DNA from: Podarcis melisellensis | Taxonomy: Eukaryota | DNA length: 64,000 bases | Direction: 5' to 3' (one strand) | Assembly (NCBI GenBank): GCA_964234715.1 | Contig: OZ174287.1 | Part shown: piece by piece, positions 1 through 26,980 of the stretch | Position numbering within the stretch: the stretch's first letter is position 1 | How the letters are laid out: the number at the start of each line of letters is the position of its first letter | Translations under genes and position numbers: made by a program | Notes under the pieces: model-generated | The model's database searches: none | What the model saw: the letters and a program-made list of their open reading frames with translations, nothing else | What the model was told of the DNA's origin: nothing

Positions 1-1241
1 CCCACAAGGCAAAGCATCGCCCTGAGAAGCTCTGAGTGAGCTTTTTCTTGGCAACGGCTGATGGTGGAATGAAGCCTTAGCAGCCCCACCCTCCCAATTT
101 GAACTTGCTCCCATAAGCCCCTTGCCTGAGAAGGGTGGCTCCTCAAAGAGCCAACCCTTTGGCCTGAAGGCGGCAGGCATTCCTGCTTTGTTTTGCGGCC
201 TCTCGCCTGGCATTCTCCCTGTGGCAGACTCTTCAGGTGAACTGGGCTTGGAGGAAGGCACCTGTAAGGGGTTCTGCAGGCCCCTGGCTAGCAACCTCTG
301 GTTCTGTATCAGGAAACCTTGGCCAGTGACACAGCAGCCCTAGTTTCTGCTAGTTCCACCTGCTCTGTCTCTGCCCTTGTTCCAAGAGCCTTGGCACCAA
401 AAGCAGATAGTGTGACCAAGGTTTCTTCTAGGCGAGCTCTCTTGTTCGTTTTTCATTCATTCACCCGCATCCTTTTGTGTTCATATCCTGCTTTTCCCTC
501 AAGGAACTCGAGATAGCATCCATGGCTCTTGCACATGTGCATACACACATTTTTATTTTATTTTATTTTAGCCGCAACCCTGCAATGTAGGTTAGTTTGA
601 GAGCTCGTTCCTAGCTTATTGTTTCCCAGTGAGCTTTTGACAGCATGGTTGCCTTACAGCGGGTTTATTCTGCCCAGGATGGGCAGGCAGACCTGTATTG
701 TGAGGCCCACAGGCTTCTGTGAGGCCCACAGGCTCCTTAGAGAGTTTCTCTAGAAGACTAGAAATAATGAAAGGAAGCCACTAATGAAAGGACCTCCTAA
801 CATGGGATCAGGTGTTTTCAAAACTGGGGGCGATTCATCACTCATCCTACTCTTAATAGGAAGCCGCAAAACGAGTGGAAACATTTTATGAACCTTGTGG
901 GAGACCTTTTCTGAACAGGACTTCCTTGTGAGTAAGCATTTTGAAAGGACTGAGGTCATAAAGATGGGCATCGCTGGTCAGTTCTGCACTGCTCTAAATG
1001 CTTTGTGAAGTCCCGCTTTTAACTCCAGTTCTGTTGTGGAAAATCAATGTCTCAGCAGGACTAAATGGCAGTTTAGGATAGATGGCAGTTCTGTCCTGGT
1101 TGAGCAGTATCTTGGGAACACCTCCGATGTAGGCGGGCAGTGAAGGTCTGTGCTGGTGGAGATGCCGTGTTCCTTTCAAGAGTTCATTTCTAAGTCGGTT
1201 GGAAATGAAGTTTAATGCCCCCTCCTTTTATTCTCCCTCAG

Positions 1242-4200
1242 GGTGGTCTTTGGGCCAGAACTTGTGCTTCTGGGTCCAGATGAACAGTTCACGGTGCTCA
1301 GCCTGTCGGGGGGCCGACCCAAGCGCCCCCATGCCCGCCGCGCCCTCTGCCTCCTCCTGGGGCCGGATTTCTGCACTGATGTTGTCACCATTGAAACGGC
1401 TGACCATGCTCGCCTGCAGCTGCAACTGGCTTACAACTGGTGAGTTGGAGACTACTGCTGAAGGGAGGCCGAAGGGAGACCCTCAGGTGGGCCAGGAGGG
1501 GGTTGTGCTGAGGGATGGGGACATGTTGATAACAGTATGGAGGGCTGAAAGTACAGTGGTACCTCAGGTTAGAGACACTTCAGGTTACAGACTCTGCTAA
1601 CCCAGAAATAGTACCTCGGGTTAAGAACTTTACCTCAGGATGAGAACAGAAATCGTGTGGCGGGAGTAGGAGGCCCCATTAGCTAAAGTGGTACCTCAGG
1701 TTAAGAACAGTTTCAGGTTAAGGACGGACCTCCACAACGAATTAAGTTCTTAACCCGAAGTACCACTGTATGCACAGAACTGAGTATTTTTGTTTCTTTT
1801 TTATGTTAACTATAACTCTTCCAGCGCATGCAGGCATACACTGTGTACCTTATTCTCCTCCCAGAATTCATGTGTTTTTTTTAAGCCTCTGGGTTAGCTC
1901 AGTTGGTAAAACATGAGATTCTTAATCTCAGGGTTCTGGGTTCAAGCCCCACATTGGGTGAAAGAATCCTGCATTGCAGGGGGTTGGGCCAGGTGACCCC
2001 TGAGGCCCCTTCCAACTCCATAATTATATGAAATAAAACAGGATGGGGAAAGACGCATGTGTCACCCAGGTGTCTTTACAGTTCACATGTAAAGCAAACG
2101 TGGGATGTATTTCTTTTTTAAACGAGAAAGAACACATGATGGAGTGGAGGGCAACCCGCCCCTCGCTCCCCAGATTTATTCTCCACCTTCCCTCATTGTG
2201 CCCTGTAGTATTTAAGCCATTTCTCCCAGTCCTCTGGCTCAGTTCCAGCATGGCAGACAGGCTGGGAGGAAACTGGCCAAAAGAAAACTACGGTGGTACT
2301 TCACGCAGCAAGGCTGCAGCAAAGTGTGTTGTGTGTGCCAGGGAGAAGCTGTCATTTCCACCCCTCACTCATTCCTGGTCTGGGTGGGTGGGTGTGTTTT
2401 GAAATAAACCCTGACCCACTTATGTAAGTAAAAGGGCAGAAACACAAACATGTCTCCACTGCATTTTATATGGCACAAAGTAATTTTTTCAGCAGGATCA
2501 CAATGGATAAAATGTGAGTTGGAGGGAAGGAATGAGGTGGGGCCATGGGAGGTCAGGTCAAGTTGGCTAAGAGTTGTGGGAGATGACAGATAACAGTATC
2601 TGTCAGGGAAGACAAGTGTGTTTTGCTGAAGTCCCGTTCCATAAGTACTGGAAGACGGTGCTGCCAAGGCAGGCAGGCTCGCTGAACCTTGACTGCACAC
2701 TGCTGCTGTCATGTATTTTTTTATTTGTTTATACAACTGAGGACTATCAAGTATATCCACCAATTTCCCCCCTCAGGCACTTTGAGATCCCCTCTGCTGC
2801 TGAAGCTTCCCGCCTGTTTAGCGTCCCAGATTTTGTGGGTGATGCCTGCAAGACCCTGGCCTCGCGTATCCGGGGGGCTGTGGCTGCCGTCACCTTTGAC
2901 GACTTCCATAAGGTAAGCTGTGTTTTCCCCCTTGACTTCCTGTCACTCGGAGGGCACAAATACTTATATGTCTCTATTTTTTCCCCTTTCTGTTTGGAAA
3001 AAAACAAATCCTTAGTCCTGTATTCATCAATATCCATGGCCAGACCAATATATTTTGCTGCCTAAGGCAAAGTGGCGGGTCTTGGTTTTGCATTGTCATT
3101 TCCCCAGTTCATTATACTAATGCGTTCGCTGGCGCGGAAGCTGTGAAATGCTATTTCTTACTGGAAGTAAATGTTGCCAGAACTCGAACCGCCTGATCTG
3201 TGCTGCCGTGTTTGGCTTCGATGGGGAAGGGACCATGCGCGGCTCCCTCCGCTTCGCCCCCAACGGCCTCGTCATCAGCAGCATTGACATCCAGAGCGTG
3301 GAGCCCGTGGACCAGAGGACGCGAGATGCCCTCCAGAAAAGCGTCCAGCTGGCTATCGAGATCACCACCAACTCTCAGGAGGCAGCTGCCAAGTAGGGAA
3401 CCTCTCCGGGGGGGGGGGCAGGGGGGGACCCTCAAGCCGACTCTTCCCCAGCTACGCTCCAATCCATGTGACACTTCCTTGGCCAAAGCATTGCCTGGTC
3501 CCTCCTCCTCTTTGGCCTGTTATTCCTGTTCCCCTGTTAGGACAAAATGTCCATGAAACAACCATCTGTCCAGAATTCTGACTCTGGAGCATCGTGATAC
3601 ATGCAGTATCATTTTGGAAAATCTTTAGAAATCATGCTAGTTGCTTTTTTAAAAAAAACACAAAAACCCAATGTAATTCATAGCGACTTAAGACAACATG
3701 AAAACCACCCTAAAAATAAAACAGAAAAATCTAAAACTCGTTCCTTTTATAAAAAGGCAGGACTGTTTTCTATATCCAGTCTCTGCGCACACATCCAATA
3801 TTCTGCATGTACATGGCATGTAGATTTCAAAATCCTGTACCAAATTAAAGCTGGTCTTTGTGGCCACCAGGAATTACACATTTATAGCTCTTTTTCCATC
3901 CAAGATTAGCTCCCAGAGTAGCTCTCAATAAAAACTCACGCAAGTGGTACAATAAAATTAGGGATTTGGGAGGGGAAGATCTCTTCGGTCCAGACCCCGG
4001 GCTCTGCTCTGCTCTCATTCAAAGACAAGCAGCCCTCTCTGCTGGGCAAATGAAAGAGCTGTACACACACCCCTCTTGTGTCCTGTTGCTTGTTCGGTTT
4101 TAGCTAGCTGCGTGAAGAGGCAAGGAGCTAAACCGGGCTCTGCAACCACCGGAAATCTGATTCGGGCATCTCTCTGGCTTCTGAAATTTCAGCAGGTCAT

Positions 4201-22450: not shown

Positions 22451-22608
22451 TGCAACAGCCCTGCAGTGCAACCGCCCCGTGAAATGTTGTGTTGAGAGAA
22501 CAATAATCTGTATTGATTTGGGGCTTTGCTATTGTATATTGGGTTTCTATTTCTTTCGTAAGCTGCTATGGGTATTCACTTGGAAGAGCGGAGCAGAAGT
22601 ATCCTAAT

Positions 22609-22609
22609 A

Positions 22610-22661
<52 letters not shown>
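22609..22661. repeat. (ATT)n microsatellite (others at 6147-6173 and 19805-19838)
   Basis: Seen directly. Confidence 0.95.
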
Positions 22662-22664
<3 letters not shown>

Positions 22665-23099
22665 ATAACAGGAAGCTGTTCTGCAGCATCTGCTCTGGTT
22701 TCTAGTTCCAAACCCTCACGCAAAACACCCTTCAGACTGCAGGAAAGCCGAATCTGCTTAAATTGTACCCCGAGGCGAGGCCAAATCCTGTGCTCAGTTG
22801 CACGCAAAATCCTGGAGCTCCGTCGAATCGCATGCATGCAGATGGGTGGGTGTGCTGCACTTTGAAATGCTTAATTAAAACAATGAAAATAAATACGGAG
22901 CAGCTCCCGAATAATAGTACGATCTCCTATTTTTGCTGCTGTTTATGGGGCGTGGACACTCCACTTCTCTGTCACACCTAACACTAAAATCCTGCATCAA
23001 TTTCCCCCGTCATTTTCTATCAGCAGCGGCCTCTTTCTGTCCCGGAGGAGACCGAATATGACGCCCGAAGTAAACCCGCTGGCAGCCTCCGCGTTCAAG

Positions 23100-23760
23100 T
23101 CTTTTGTTTATAAATCTATAATCTTCCTATTGAGCGCATGCGCTGCGCCGCGGTAAACGGCGAAGAAAACCGAGCGAATCATCCGCGCATGCGCAGCTCG
23201 TGGAGTAACGACTGTCATGAACTTTAGAATATGATGCGCTTTCCGTTTTACCCCCACCCGGCCCCGCCCCGCCTCCTTCCCTCCAGCTTTCGGGGCCTGA
23301 TTGGTCGCTACAACGGGCCAATGCCGCGCTGCAGAACACTCCCGTTACTGGGTAGATTTCCTTCAATAGGTAGGACGAGTCTGTCTGGCGACGTTTCTGT
23401 GAGGACCGAGAGAAGAGTGGAGGAAAAGGCTGATGGTTTGGCGGGTTGCTTGTTAGGAATGAACTGGGACGACGTTTACTCGAATGCAGGAAATAAGGGA
23501 AATTCCCGGCCACGAGATTAGATGAAGGGCTTTGACTATTGCACCTCGAGCTGTTCTCATCCCCCCCCCCGCACCAAAATGGAAGAGGCCCACTCGCTTC
23601 CCCTCTCGCTGACGTCACTTCTGGCGCAGGCGCCGCATTTCCGTTGACGCCACTTTTTTCTTTCCTGTCTTATCTCTCGCCTCACTTCCGCGGAGGAAAA
23701 CAGCGGCCTTAAAAGAGTTTGGTCGCAGTGGGAGCCCGTAGCGGGCCGCGCGCGCAGGTG
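23100..23760. promoter_or_regulatory. CpG-island promoter, probably bidirectional (Cys-rich membrane protein gene on +; possibly the distal TLCD3B isoform on -)
   Basis: CpG-rich. NRF1 palindromes GCGCATGCGC at 23134-23143 and 23185-23194, GC box 23261-23270, inverted and direct CCAAT boxes at about 23300 and 23318, full CRE TGACGTCA 23610-23617, ETS CACTTCCG, and a splice donor at 23757|23758. Confidence 0.75.
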
Positions 23761-24590
23761 CGGTTTCCAGGGCGACCGAGGGACGCCTTGGTATATTTAC
23801 ATACTGCATGGCTTCCAAGTTGCTCAGAGCAGCGTCTCCCCCTCTCCCGTTTTATCCTCACAACAGCCCCGTGAGGTAGGCCAGGCTGAGAGACAACGGC
23901 TTGAGCTTCAGAGCCCAGTTTAGTCTCGGCCGCTCGCTCCACAATGCAGGAAGCCTGGGAAACGTATGAACGTGATACGAATAAAGCTGCACCGTGAATG
24001 ATAAACTATATTCATAAGGGAGTGGACATCAATGAGAAGAGCCTGGAGGTTCATCAACATTGGGAGGAGGAGGAAGGCCTGTTTCGTTTCCATTTGGTTA
24101 TGGAAAGAGGGAATTTTGAGGAAGGGATGCTCTGTACAGGGAGAGGGGAAGTAGGCTTGTGGGAGGGGGTTGTGGGGTCAGCTGTCAAAAGAGAAGACTG
24201 TCAAAACTGTCAAAATATTCGAGCTTCATTTCCAAAATAAAAATTTATTTATCCCAGTGACACTGAAACTTTAATACCATTCTACACATGTGTGTGTTAT
24301 AACAGCAACATAAGAGCTTTGGAGCCTGTTTGATCAGTCTCAATATGGTTGAGACCTCTTTGAAATCAGTAGTGTTCAGAGTTGATGTATATGCATGAAA
24401 GCTTCATGAAAAAGTGAGTTTTAACTCTGTTGTTCAGTAAATTCTGATCCTCTCTTTTGATCTAGCAGACTATAAGGAACAAGTGGAAGCATGGACTGTA
24501 ATAGCTTCAAGTTATTTTTCTCTTCCTCGGGGCTCTGAGCTATCCATGGAGCCTCCAGAGGTTGATGCCTAGTCCTTCCCCAACTGAGGA

Positions 24591-26468
24591 ATGGCAGTAA
24601 GTAGAGCATTCTTACTCTGTATTCACACTGCCCTTCACTTCACTTCTCAAAGTGCCCCATCTCTCCTCTCCCAGTTTGACATGTGATTGAACTAAATTTA
24701 ATAAATCTACTTAGGAATCAGTGAAGACTGATTTGAAAACCATGTGTTAAAATTCAAACATTTTGAGTTTGGCATATTGATTATTGTGGGATACTCTCCA
24801 TATAAGTTTTAGTATGTGATCCTCTGTGCCTCACAGATATTTGAAGGTTAGTACTGTTTAGTGAGTTTCTATCTCTGCAGCTGCTGCTGCCACCACCAAA
24901 TTAAGAGGAATCACCTAACTTCCAAACATGTACTAACCTATGTCAGAGAAGCCATACACTTGGTGTATATGCTTCTGGTCAGAGGTTAAACATTTCCTCT
25001 GCCAATTTTCTGACATTAAGAACTTTCCAATTTCCCAGAAGGTATTTCACGCTAAGTCAAAAGCTGTATTTCAGTGCTCAGCCATGTAATTCCTTTAATT
25101 GCTCTTCTTCCTCCTCACCACTCCATACTGTAAACGTCCCTTCTCCTTTGGCTTTCCTCCCCTTACAGACTCCATCGCTGAACCCTCCACCAGACCTCCC
25201 TTTTGCCACAACCTTATTCCTGCCTCTCCCTGCCATCGTTTTCTTGGTCGTTGGATCCTACTTAATACTCCTGGCCCTGGTCCTTGTCCTCCGACAGTGC
25301 CTGATGGTAACTTGGGGAAGGGATGGCAATAGTTGAAAGGGCAAACACATTTGGGGATTTTTATAGGTGTAGTAATGAGAATAGATCTATCTTTTCCATA
25401 GTGCATTACAGCATACCATATGACAGTGCATTATGGGAGCAGTAGTCCTTTGGAGAGCAAGTAGAAAGGGGAACAAATTCACATTGTTAATATTGTGCGG
25501 TTGGTGTTCTGACAATTTTGGATTACTTGCAATCAATTCTGTAACAAATCTTAGGAGCTCTAGCCTATAAGAGATAAAAGGAATTGCTTCTTAACTCAAG
25601 TTGTTTGGTGAACCAACCTGGTTTTCCTTCTCTTACCTCTTTGCAGGCCCGGGGTCTTTGTGCCAACTGCTGTTCCTGTGAAAAGCGGCCTTGGCCAAAC
25701 ATGTGCGAATGCTGTTTGACCTGTGCAGAATCATGTGACTGTGCCCTTCCTTCCCCAGCCCGCTGTATGGATCGCTACTGCACCTGTACTAATGTGAGTT
25801 TTCCCTCCGGATAATTGATCGGCTTTTTGGAAATATCTGAGACTAGTTCCCCCTGGGGCATTTGAATGCAGTGGTACCTCTGGTTACAAACTTAATTCGT
25901 TCGTTTTTTTACTAAAGCCCATACTTAAAATCATATGCTAACCAAAACAGTATATATAATTTGAAAGGAGAGGGACAGGCAAGAGGGATCCGTGTGGGAG
26001 GAGGAAAGATGAACAGGGTAGACAGACACTTACACTTTCTTTAGAGCTTGTCAGAGCTTCTCCAGGGAGGCTGTGGCCTACATGTTGAGAAACTTCAAAC
26101 TGTTCAGAGTGGGAAAATGTCAAAGGAACTTACCATGATATTCAGACCTATCCTTTGCTGGTATCTTATCTTCAGACAATGCCTATTTATTAATTTAAAA
26201 TATTTATACCCTGCCTTGCAACAGTCTTGTGGTAATCATTATTCAGTATTTCCCTGAGTCTCAAGTTTAGTGAAGGATGCTGTAACATCTTGATGCAGGT
26301 ATTTCCATAGGCTAACAGTGTACAATTTCTGTCTCTTGCCAGCAGGGCTGGGAACCAGGGGCTTGTTCCTTTCCTCGCTTGTGTCCACTCTGCGATTGTG
26401 CCTGCACATACCAGCCCCCAGACTGCCAGAACATCAATTGCATTTGCTTTGAGATCAAACTGCGATAA
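24591..26468 (+). CDS. Uncharacterised 138-aa single-pass transmembrane cysteine-rich protein (resembles human LOC112694756, upstream of ALDOA). Exons 24591-24596, 25169-25306, 25647-25793, 26343-26468
   Basis: Translation MATPSLNPPPDLPFATTLFLPLPAIVFLVVGSYLILLALVLVLRQCLMARGLCANCCSCEKRPWPNMCECCLTCAESCDCALPSPARCMDRYCTCTNQGWEPGACSFPRLCPLCDCACTYQPPDCQNINCICFEIKLR*. All introns are phase-0 GT-AG. AATAAA at 26730-26735; likely non-coding exon 1 ends at 23757. The motifs LP.PAIVF, CPLCDCACT and CFEIKLR match the recalled human protein. Confidence 0.88.
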
Positions 26469-26980
26469 AGAACTCAAAATAACAAAAAGATTATGTCTGT
26501 GATTTGGGAGTGTGGGAGGCTCTGGAAGTATTCATACAAGTGGTGGATCCTACAAGCGGTGGACAAGTAAAATGGGGAGTTAGTTGCTCAGCCTGACATA
26601 ATTAACTTGTCCTGATGCAAGAAGTTTTGAAACTGAGCTTTTTCTTTTTCATGTTGATTTTTCAAGTGCTTTTGTACTTTGTACTGCATGTTTGATATTA
26701 ATGTTTTTATATGAATTGCTGCATTTTATAATAAAGCAGGTTGAATATCACTTGTGTCTCTCTTTAATGAGAATGCAAATGGAGTCCATTTAATAGACAT
26801 TTGCTGCATGGAGAAGTTTATGAAAAAGTTTAGGTATTTTTTCTTGTTCACCAAAGTATGCAGTTGAATGTTGGAAGCTGGAAGATATGCAATGAGGATA
26901 TCATTGTCAGAAGATCTGTGTGAAATAAAAAATAATAATATAGTATCTTCCAGTAGGGGGAAAAAGGCTTTCCTCCCCGA

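Follow-up and report, generated by a model that had tools for sequence, protein, structure and literature searches.

The gene described here lies on the plus strand of a 64,000-nucleotide stretch of DNA from Podarcis melisellensis (NCBI GenBank assembly GCA_964234715.1, contig OZ174287.1; hereafter the window) and encodes a small protein comprising a short N-terminal segment, one hydrophobic helix and a long cysteine-rich tail. Exon 1 (24474-24596; found in the sequence and in contig pieces from four sequencing runs, whose reach sets the 5' limit) contains the 5' leader and ends with the start codon and one further codon (ATG GCA, 24591-24596). The donor GT follows directly at 24597, intron 1 beginning with GTAAGT, and an in-frame stop (TGA, 24585-24587) two codons 5' of the start codon excludes that the frame starts further 5' within exon 1. 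Exon 2 (25169-25306; 46 codons, one Cys), flanked by TTACAG and GTAACT, encodes a Pro-rich acidic N-terminal segment, the predicted transmembrane helix and an RQC motif. The hydrophobic core of the helix, as delimited by AlphaFold2 (AF2) modelling of an orthologue and by hydropathy, spans residues of about 24-43 (AIVFLVVGSYLILLALVLVL; 25232-25291). Exon 3 (25647-25793; 49 codons, 13 Cys), flanked by TTGCAG and GTGAGT, encodes the first half of the Cys-rich domain (CxxCCxC ... CxCCxxCAESCDC ... PSPxRC). The coding part of exon 4 (26346-26468; 40 codons, 8 Cys, stop codon TAA at 26466-26468) carries the near-invariant C-terminal block CPLCDCACxYQPPDCQxINCICFEIKLR, and is followed by a 3' untranslated region (26469-26750) with a poly(A) signal, AATAAA, at 26730-26735. 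The limits of exons 2-4 follow from translation and from contig joints, that of exon 4 in all four runs, and the end of the 3' untranslated region from the contig ends and the sequence.

An earlier note made from the sequence alone had proposed a product of 138 amino acids with 22 Cys, all but one in the last 90 residues, ending CICFEIKLR. Translated exon by exon, the product comprises MA followed by 46, 49 and 40 residues, i.e. 137 amino acids when exon 4 starts at 26346. The Cys count (1 + 13 + 8 over exons 2-4), its concentration in the last 90 residues and the C-terminal sequence were as proposed, and it also proved correct that no single open reading frame (ORF) in the ORF list spans the whole four-exon product. 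The length differs by one residue due to a tandem acceptor (cagCAG|G, 26340-26348), whose alternative CAG (26343-26345) would add one Gln and give the 138-residue form.

Transcript data were available as contigs from four RNA-like runs, belonging to four studies and two closely related species. The runs were taken as RNA because there are few other explanations for contigs that lack introns and show canonical borders in each of four data sets. Each run gave one contig of 785-838 nucleotides at a depth of 69-151 (two overlapping contigs in run X6), covering 24474/24530-24596, 25169-25305, 25646-25793 and 26346-26736/26750 of the window. The joints 24596>25169, 25305>25646 (cut +1) and 25793>26346 were all of the GT..AG type and were found in all four runs; intronic sequence was confined to separate contigs with a depth of 3-5. 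The 3' ends of the contigs, at 26736-26750, fall 1-15 nucleotides past the poly(A) signal. The last intron ended at 26345 in every run, so that the distal AG of the tandem acceptor was used, the one that would start exon 4 at 26343 was unused and the transcribed form has 137 amino acids and lacks the Gln. The proposed 138-residue length was thus not found in the transcripts, although it does exist as RefSeq isoform X1 in Zootoca, which uses the proximal AG; the snake, Sceloporus and gecko proteins are without the extra Gln. Within the coding exons, five differences between the relatives' contigs and the window were derived by hand: three synonymous (25216, 25243 and 26414) and two conservative replacements (Ile to Val in the helix at 25235, Ala to Thr at 25758).

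Some further features were seen around the exons. The 5' leader contains two short upstream ORFs, at 24491-24538 (15 codons) and 24546-24572 (8 codons), and the relatives' transcripts have a 7-nucleotide insertion at 24491, within this part of the leader; as the leader part is also without snake alignment, the upstream ORFs are probably not conserved. One run from the second relative species had an additional joint, 23488>24530, which skips 1041 nucleotides with GG..CG ends and is held on one side by 28 letters (23460-23488); the joint may reflect a non-coding first exon further upstream, close to the GC-richer stretch at 23.1-23.6 kb, or an artefact. Positions 25865-25902 in intron 3 had a summed depth of 900-3000, with many contigs running off both sides, and appear to belong to an interspersed repeat that is abundant and transcribed, and not to this gene. 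A long simple repeat of the (ATT/TAA) type lies at 22604-22680 (22601-22674 masked as repeat) and gives a poly-Ile run in one ORF.

When the stop-free stretch around exon 3 was used as query, a single protein was matched, the 137-residue LOC134495708 of the boa Candoia aspera (E 1.6e-15, 80% identity over the exon). This snake protein and that of Zootoca vivipara (XP_034990619.1), which differs from the window exons by 3 residues, were used as full-length proxies for the lizard product. The Candoia aspera protein as query matched 22 proteins, including entries labelled "uncharaterized LOC112694756 homolog" from Zootoca, Sceloporus, the caecilian Geotrypetes, the tortoises Gopherus and Chelonoidis, and echidna, entries labelled "si:ch211-198p11.6" from sturgeon and devil ray, and further entries from axolotl, bowfin, gecko and skink. 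Identity to the snake gene was 91%, 80% and 95% for exons 2, 3 and 4, respectively, and the block CPLCDCACxxQxPDCxxxNCxCFEIKLR, present in the window, was invariant in the orthologue alignment. In alignments of the window with snake and gecko DNA, only the exons, including the start-codon exon (92% over 37 nucleotides of the start region in snake), and part of the 3' untranslated region could be aligned, and exon 4 could be aligned as DNA also to ray (78% over 88 nucleotides) and opossum (76% over 89 nucleotides). The AG and GT sites fall at the same codons in snake, in gecko and, for exons 2-3, in ray, giving a shared layout in which the introns follow codon 2, follow the helix and split the Cys domain midway. 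With its joints present in transcripts, and with no islands other than the exons aligning to snake and gecko DNA, the four-exon arrangement is far beyond chance.

Selection on the coding sequence was estimated from Nei-Gojobori counts of nonsynonymous (dN) and synonymous (dS) changes, summed over exons 2-4. Compared with snake, the window gave a dN of 0.062 and a dS of 0.72 (dN/dS 0.086), and compared with gecko a dN of 0.117 and a dS of 0.53 (dN/dS 0.22). All 22 Cys are kept in snake and 21 of the 22 in gecko, with eight switches between TGT and TGC at kept Cys in each comparison; the constraint therefore acts on the amino acid. The gene is transcribed, correctly spliced and protein-coding, and is under strong purifying selection. 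The proposal of a real gene in the earlier note, which was to fall if there were no conserved orthologues, no spliced transcripts or neutral codon evolution, is borne out on each of these counts: orthologues and spliced transcripts exist, and codon evolution is not neutral.

Gene order places this locus in a conserved neighbourhood. The window has TLC-like ORFs on the minus strand (about 11.9-12.2 kb), CRK-like ORFs (30.9-31.9 kb) and, on the plus strand, aldolase ORFs (42.6-46.3 kb). The snake and gecko loci likewise have a TLC-domain gene on the opposite strand, then the gene studied here, then an SH2-SH3 (CRK-like) gene, and human gene lists for 16p11.2 give C16orf92, TLCD3B, LOC112694756 and ALDOA in that order; the lizard gene thus has the same position between the TLC-domain gene (TLCD3B) and ALDOA. 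Together with the RefSeq labels, this upholds the resemblance to the LOC112694756 product that had been pointed out in the earlier note. Judged by database labels and gene order, the lizard gene is established as the orthologue of human LOC112694756 and zebrafish si:ch211-198p11.6, and that it is both a real coding gene and this orthologue we regard as close to certain. The CRK-like gene of snake and gecko encodes 251 amino acids and lies between this gene and the next one, and in opossum an aldolase gene follows directly, 4 kb downstream (comparison loci in snake, gecko and opossum: L001, 18582-20600; L002, 16222-17917; L004, 18988-21824). Absence of the CRK-like gene is what places the mammalian gene next to ALDOA.

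The range of the family was examined with a profile of 18 vertebrate sequences, searched against 1.84 billion cluster representatives. This gave 103 representatives at E<=1e-3, 49 of them at E<=1e-10, and 30 of the 103 were looked up by name. Among these named members were vertebrates (lamprey, smelt and a frog), the hemichordate Ptychodera, chelicerates (horseshoe crabs and many spiders), crustaceans (a copepod and an amphipod), molluscs (bivalves, gastropods and an argonaut) and annelids (tube-worms), as well as Priapulus, Trichinella, the orthonectid Intoshia and Seison; a word search of labels with a 39-sequence profile added coelacanth, Xenopus and other frogs. As its relatives include those of lamprey, ray, molluscs, chelicerates, a priapulid and a nematode, the description of the gene as ancient was well founded. 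No bird, crocodilian, insect or Caenorhabditis was among the names looked up, no search having been aimed at their absence, and none of the family entries looked up had a curated functional name. Automatic names in the family are misleading, and include keratin-associated protein 10-2, 5-4, 5-9-like, 4-1-like and 5-2, sperm mitochondrial-associated cysteine-rich protein and, in Trichinella, histone-lysine N-methyltransferase MEDEA. Such labels, among them keratin-associated protein in leopard and paddlefish and sperm mitochondrial cysteine-rich protein in opossum, are mis-annotations due to Cys-rich composition alone; the entries affected include those of Panthera, Monodelphis, Xenopus, Limulus and Priapulus.

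Family members share a common plan, consisting of a short N-terminus, an LPxPAI sequence leading into a helix with a near-invariant Tyr, the motif R-x-C-L-x-x-R-G, the Cys domain and a terminal NCxCFE-x-K/R-L; a C-terminal extension is frequent in invertebrate members. In an alignment of 39 sequences from many phyla, about 15 Cys columns were 70-100% conserved, Tyr33 was conserved in 97% of the members, and non-Cys residues were fixed alongside the Cys in the segments AExCDC, PS..CLD and NCxCFE. These proteins form an undescribed, bilaterian-wide family with no Pfam entry.

Modelling with AF2, using 18 and then 39 sequences, was confident only for the helix (residues 22-49; pLDDT, the predicted local distance difference test score, above 90 on the orthologue), whose mean Kyte-Doolittle hydropathy is about 3.1, in keeping with the single hydrophobic helix that had been recognised from the sequence. 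The segment before it is short (mostly <35 amino acids), acidic and free of Cys, and no signal peptide was found. Among 89 family members with a clear helix, Lys and Arg were more numerous in the 15 residues after the helix than in the 15 before it in 86, and the reverse was found in none (means of 2.49 and 0.30); the net charge was -0.72 before the helix and +1.51 after it. Lack of a signal peptide, a short uncharged or acidic N-terminus and basic residues after the helix are features of a type III signal anchor, and by the positive-inside rule the bias in Lys and Arg suggests an N-out/C-in orientation with the Cys domain in the cytosol. We consider this topology likely, and the cytosolic C-terminus suggested in the earlier note thereby gains statistical support. 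The leopard and wallaby proteins, one unlabelled 203-residue match and two tortoise models have an additional 40-70 residues ahead of the conserved start region; these extensions may represent alternative upstream starts or annotation artefacts, and an N-terminal extension of such length is an awkward fit with type III insertion.

The explanation that best accommodates these results, to which we assign a probability of roughly 0.6, is a type III membrane protein with a cytosolic metal-thiolate domain, acting as a small accessory or scaffold subunit. The 137-residue product would insert as a single-pass protein in the N-out/C-in orientation, leaving the acidic, Pro-rich N-terminus of about 20 residues outside the cell or in the lumen, while the domain of ~90 residues with 21 Cys would face the reducing cytosol, where disulfides are not expected to hold it together. 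This domain would most likely be a folded all-thiolate metal-cluster module, with Zn(II) as the most likely metal and Cu(I) or Fe-S as possible alternatives; zinc is the usual ligand for all-Cys sites. A metal-thiolate fold would be the simplest solution because the domain is predicted to be cytosolic, has few hydrophobic residues and combines ~15 fixed Cys with fixed acidic, Pro, Asn and Phe positions. We rate such a putative domain at slightly better than even odds. The Cys nearest the membrane, in RQC at the end of the helix and in the CxxCC that follows (C53, C56 and C57, with C59 just beyond), are probably S-acylated as well, a modification that is common on Cys at the end of, or just after, a membrane helix and for which their predicted cytosolic position would be suitable; acylation and metal binding could co-exist.

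The predicted helix is long (about 24-26 residues) and well conserved, with its LPxPAI lead-in and near-invariant Tyr, and as the helix itself is conserved, packing against a partner is suggested. The protein may thus serve another membrane protein as an accessory or scaffold subunit, holding the metal-thiolate domain at the membrane surface, which as a separate claim we find doubtful. Helix length is known to follow the cellular compartment, and going by this trend a helix of such length and strong hydrophobicity suggests that the protein resides in the plasma membrane or post-Golgi membranes and not in the endoplasmic reticulum.

Several results weigh against the proposal of a membrane-anchored metal module. 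The exons gave no Pfam match at E<=10, and the 39 family members gave nothing at E<=1 beyond single weak matches, with no metallothionein, CXC/tesmin or CYSTM profile among them. A profile search of PDB sequences gave no relative. The AF2 confidence for the Cys domain was low (pLDDT 40-63), with no readable fold or metal site, and Foldseek searches of the PDB with this model, in which the Cys domain is of low confidence, gave no match; low AF2 confidence is usual for metal-dependent folds such as that of metallothionein. Metal binding and acylation are also read from sequence, the topology follows from a statistical rule and not from experiment, and the RNA nature of the four runs was guessed from their intron-less contigs. 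Three weak similarities found along the way were discarded: a FeoB-associated Cys-rich membrane protein in Pfam (E 0.058), regarded as noise from the helix or from composition; sodium channel beta-2 in the PDB profile search (E 0.11), regarded as helix-to-helix noise; and the influenza B NB glycoprotein, the top score (0.75) from ESM Atlas features, which was under the useful range.

The low confidence of the Cys domain would fit an unfolded tail, and the tail might then be mainly multiply S-acylated (palmitoylated) and pinned to the inner leaflet like a cysteine-string region, forming a lipid-raft or vesicle-membrane anchor with no metal fold. Such a tail would be in keeping with the predicted cytosolic side of the Cys domain, with the several Cys within 15 residues of the helix end, and with CC and CxC runs resembling the acylated strings of cysteine-string protein and SNAP-25. 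Acylated strings, however, tolerate shuffling of their Cys, whereas here, in species as far apart as ray and mammal, ~15 Cys columns and the D, P, Q, N, F and E residues interspersed among them keep their places up to 90 residues away from the membrane, a pattern that argues for a defined three-dimensional arrangement; we therefore consider acylation as the main role of the tail unlikely. Still less probable is the reverse, type II orientation (N-in, C-out), in which the tail would form an extracellular or luminal disulfide-knotted module, as in a ligand or receptor ectodomain. An extracellular location is indeed common among small Cys-rich domains with fixed spacing, and a protein with no signal peptide and a signal-anchor-like helix could be inserted in this way, but the charge bias described above favours the opposite orientation almost throughout the family. 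A disulfide framework is also a poor fit, since tail Cys counts range between 19 and 29, and roughly every second vertebrate orthologue has an odd count. N-x-S/T sequons showed no excess in the C-terminal part, occurring there at 0.46 per 100 amino acids against 0.80 in the N-terminal part, a difference too small for sequon enrichment to be used as a test of topology.

That the locus is non-coding, being either a chance mosaic of ORF pieces or the leader exons of a neighbour such as ALDOA, could be argued from the short exon ORFs, none of which has a Pfam match, and from the two upstream ORFs in the leader. We consider this extremely improbable: the spliced contigs stop at a poly(A) signal belonging to this gene itself, the CRK-like gene separates this gene from ALDOA in squamates, dN/dS lies at 0.09-0.22 with Cys kept through synonymous codon swaps, and full-length relatives with the same architecture are found across phyla.

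The existence of the gene is not new, as automatic RefSeq models are available for a closely related lizard and many other animals, but a description of the family, covering its range, its lack of known domains and its likely topology, is absent from the literature searched. Full-text searches under the human and clone names returned gene lists and expression tables only, and no functional study. Hardly any change has accumulated in the C-terminal 28 residues since cartilaginous and bony vertebrates diverged. As a small, conserved gene without a known domain it is among the genes of unknown function that are worth an experiment. If it is true that the cytosolic domain binds metal, the family would represent a new class of membrane-tethered metal-thiolate proteins. 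The human copy lies inside the 16p11.2 interval, where it appears only in gene lists; recurrent deletions and duplications of this interval are linked to autism, obesity and schizophrenia. A wider proposal, which we put forward tentatively and at somewhat less than even odds, is that of an undescribed bilaterian family of membrane-tethered all-Cys metal-cluster domains working as accessory subunits, whose human copy would be an overlooked dosage-sensitive candidate in 16p11.2 BP4-BP5.

The lizard protein was compared with known systems, of which the LOC112694756 and si:ch211-198p11.6 models are the closest. These share its length (137-138 amino acids), four exons, neighbourhood and a near-identical C-terminal block, and show no substantive difference, the entries being automatic models. 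Keratin-associated proteins and the sperm mitochondrial cysteine-rich protein have only a Cys-rich composition in common with it, and are without the N-terminal helix and the C-terminal block. The Cys-rich domain of the lizard protein resembles metallothioneins in having 21 Cys in 90 residues, arranged in CC, CxC and CxxC patterns, no His and few aromatic residues, and in its low AF2 confidence in the absence of metal. Metallothioneins, in contrast, are soluble proteins of about 60 amino acids with no membrane helix, whereas the lizard family has many invariant non-Cys residues. The spacing CxCCxxCxxxCxCx7Cx3CC loosely recalls that of the CXC domains of tesmin/TSO1 and E(z) (Zn3Cys9), a likeness of use as a lead only; the CXC proteins are nuclear and soluble, and none of the 39 family members matched the Pfam CXC models at E<=1.

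Two further systems combine a metal- or Cys-related module with a membrane helix. CYSTM proteins, which Venancio and Aravind are said to have proposed in 2010 to be involved in stress or metal tolerance, are likewise small eukaryotic proteins with a Cys-rich stretch and one membrane helix. They are, however, tail-anchored, with the Cys in or next to the C-terminal helix, whereas the helix of the lizard protein is N-terminal and its Cys domain a separate tail of 90 residues; neither a C-terminal Cys-rich transmembrane module nor a match to the CYSTM profile was found. MitoNEET/CISD1 has a short N-terminus, a single N-terminal anchor helix and a small cytosolic metal-cluster domain. This is the architecture proposed for the lizard protein, in which the metal cluster is putative, and the two differ in that the lizard protein has neither the CDGSH 3Cys-1His motif nor any sequence relation to mitoNEET, and a longer and more hydrophobic helix.

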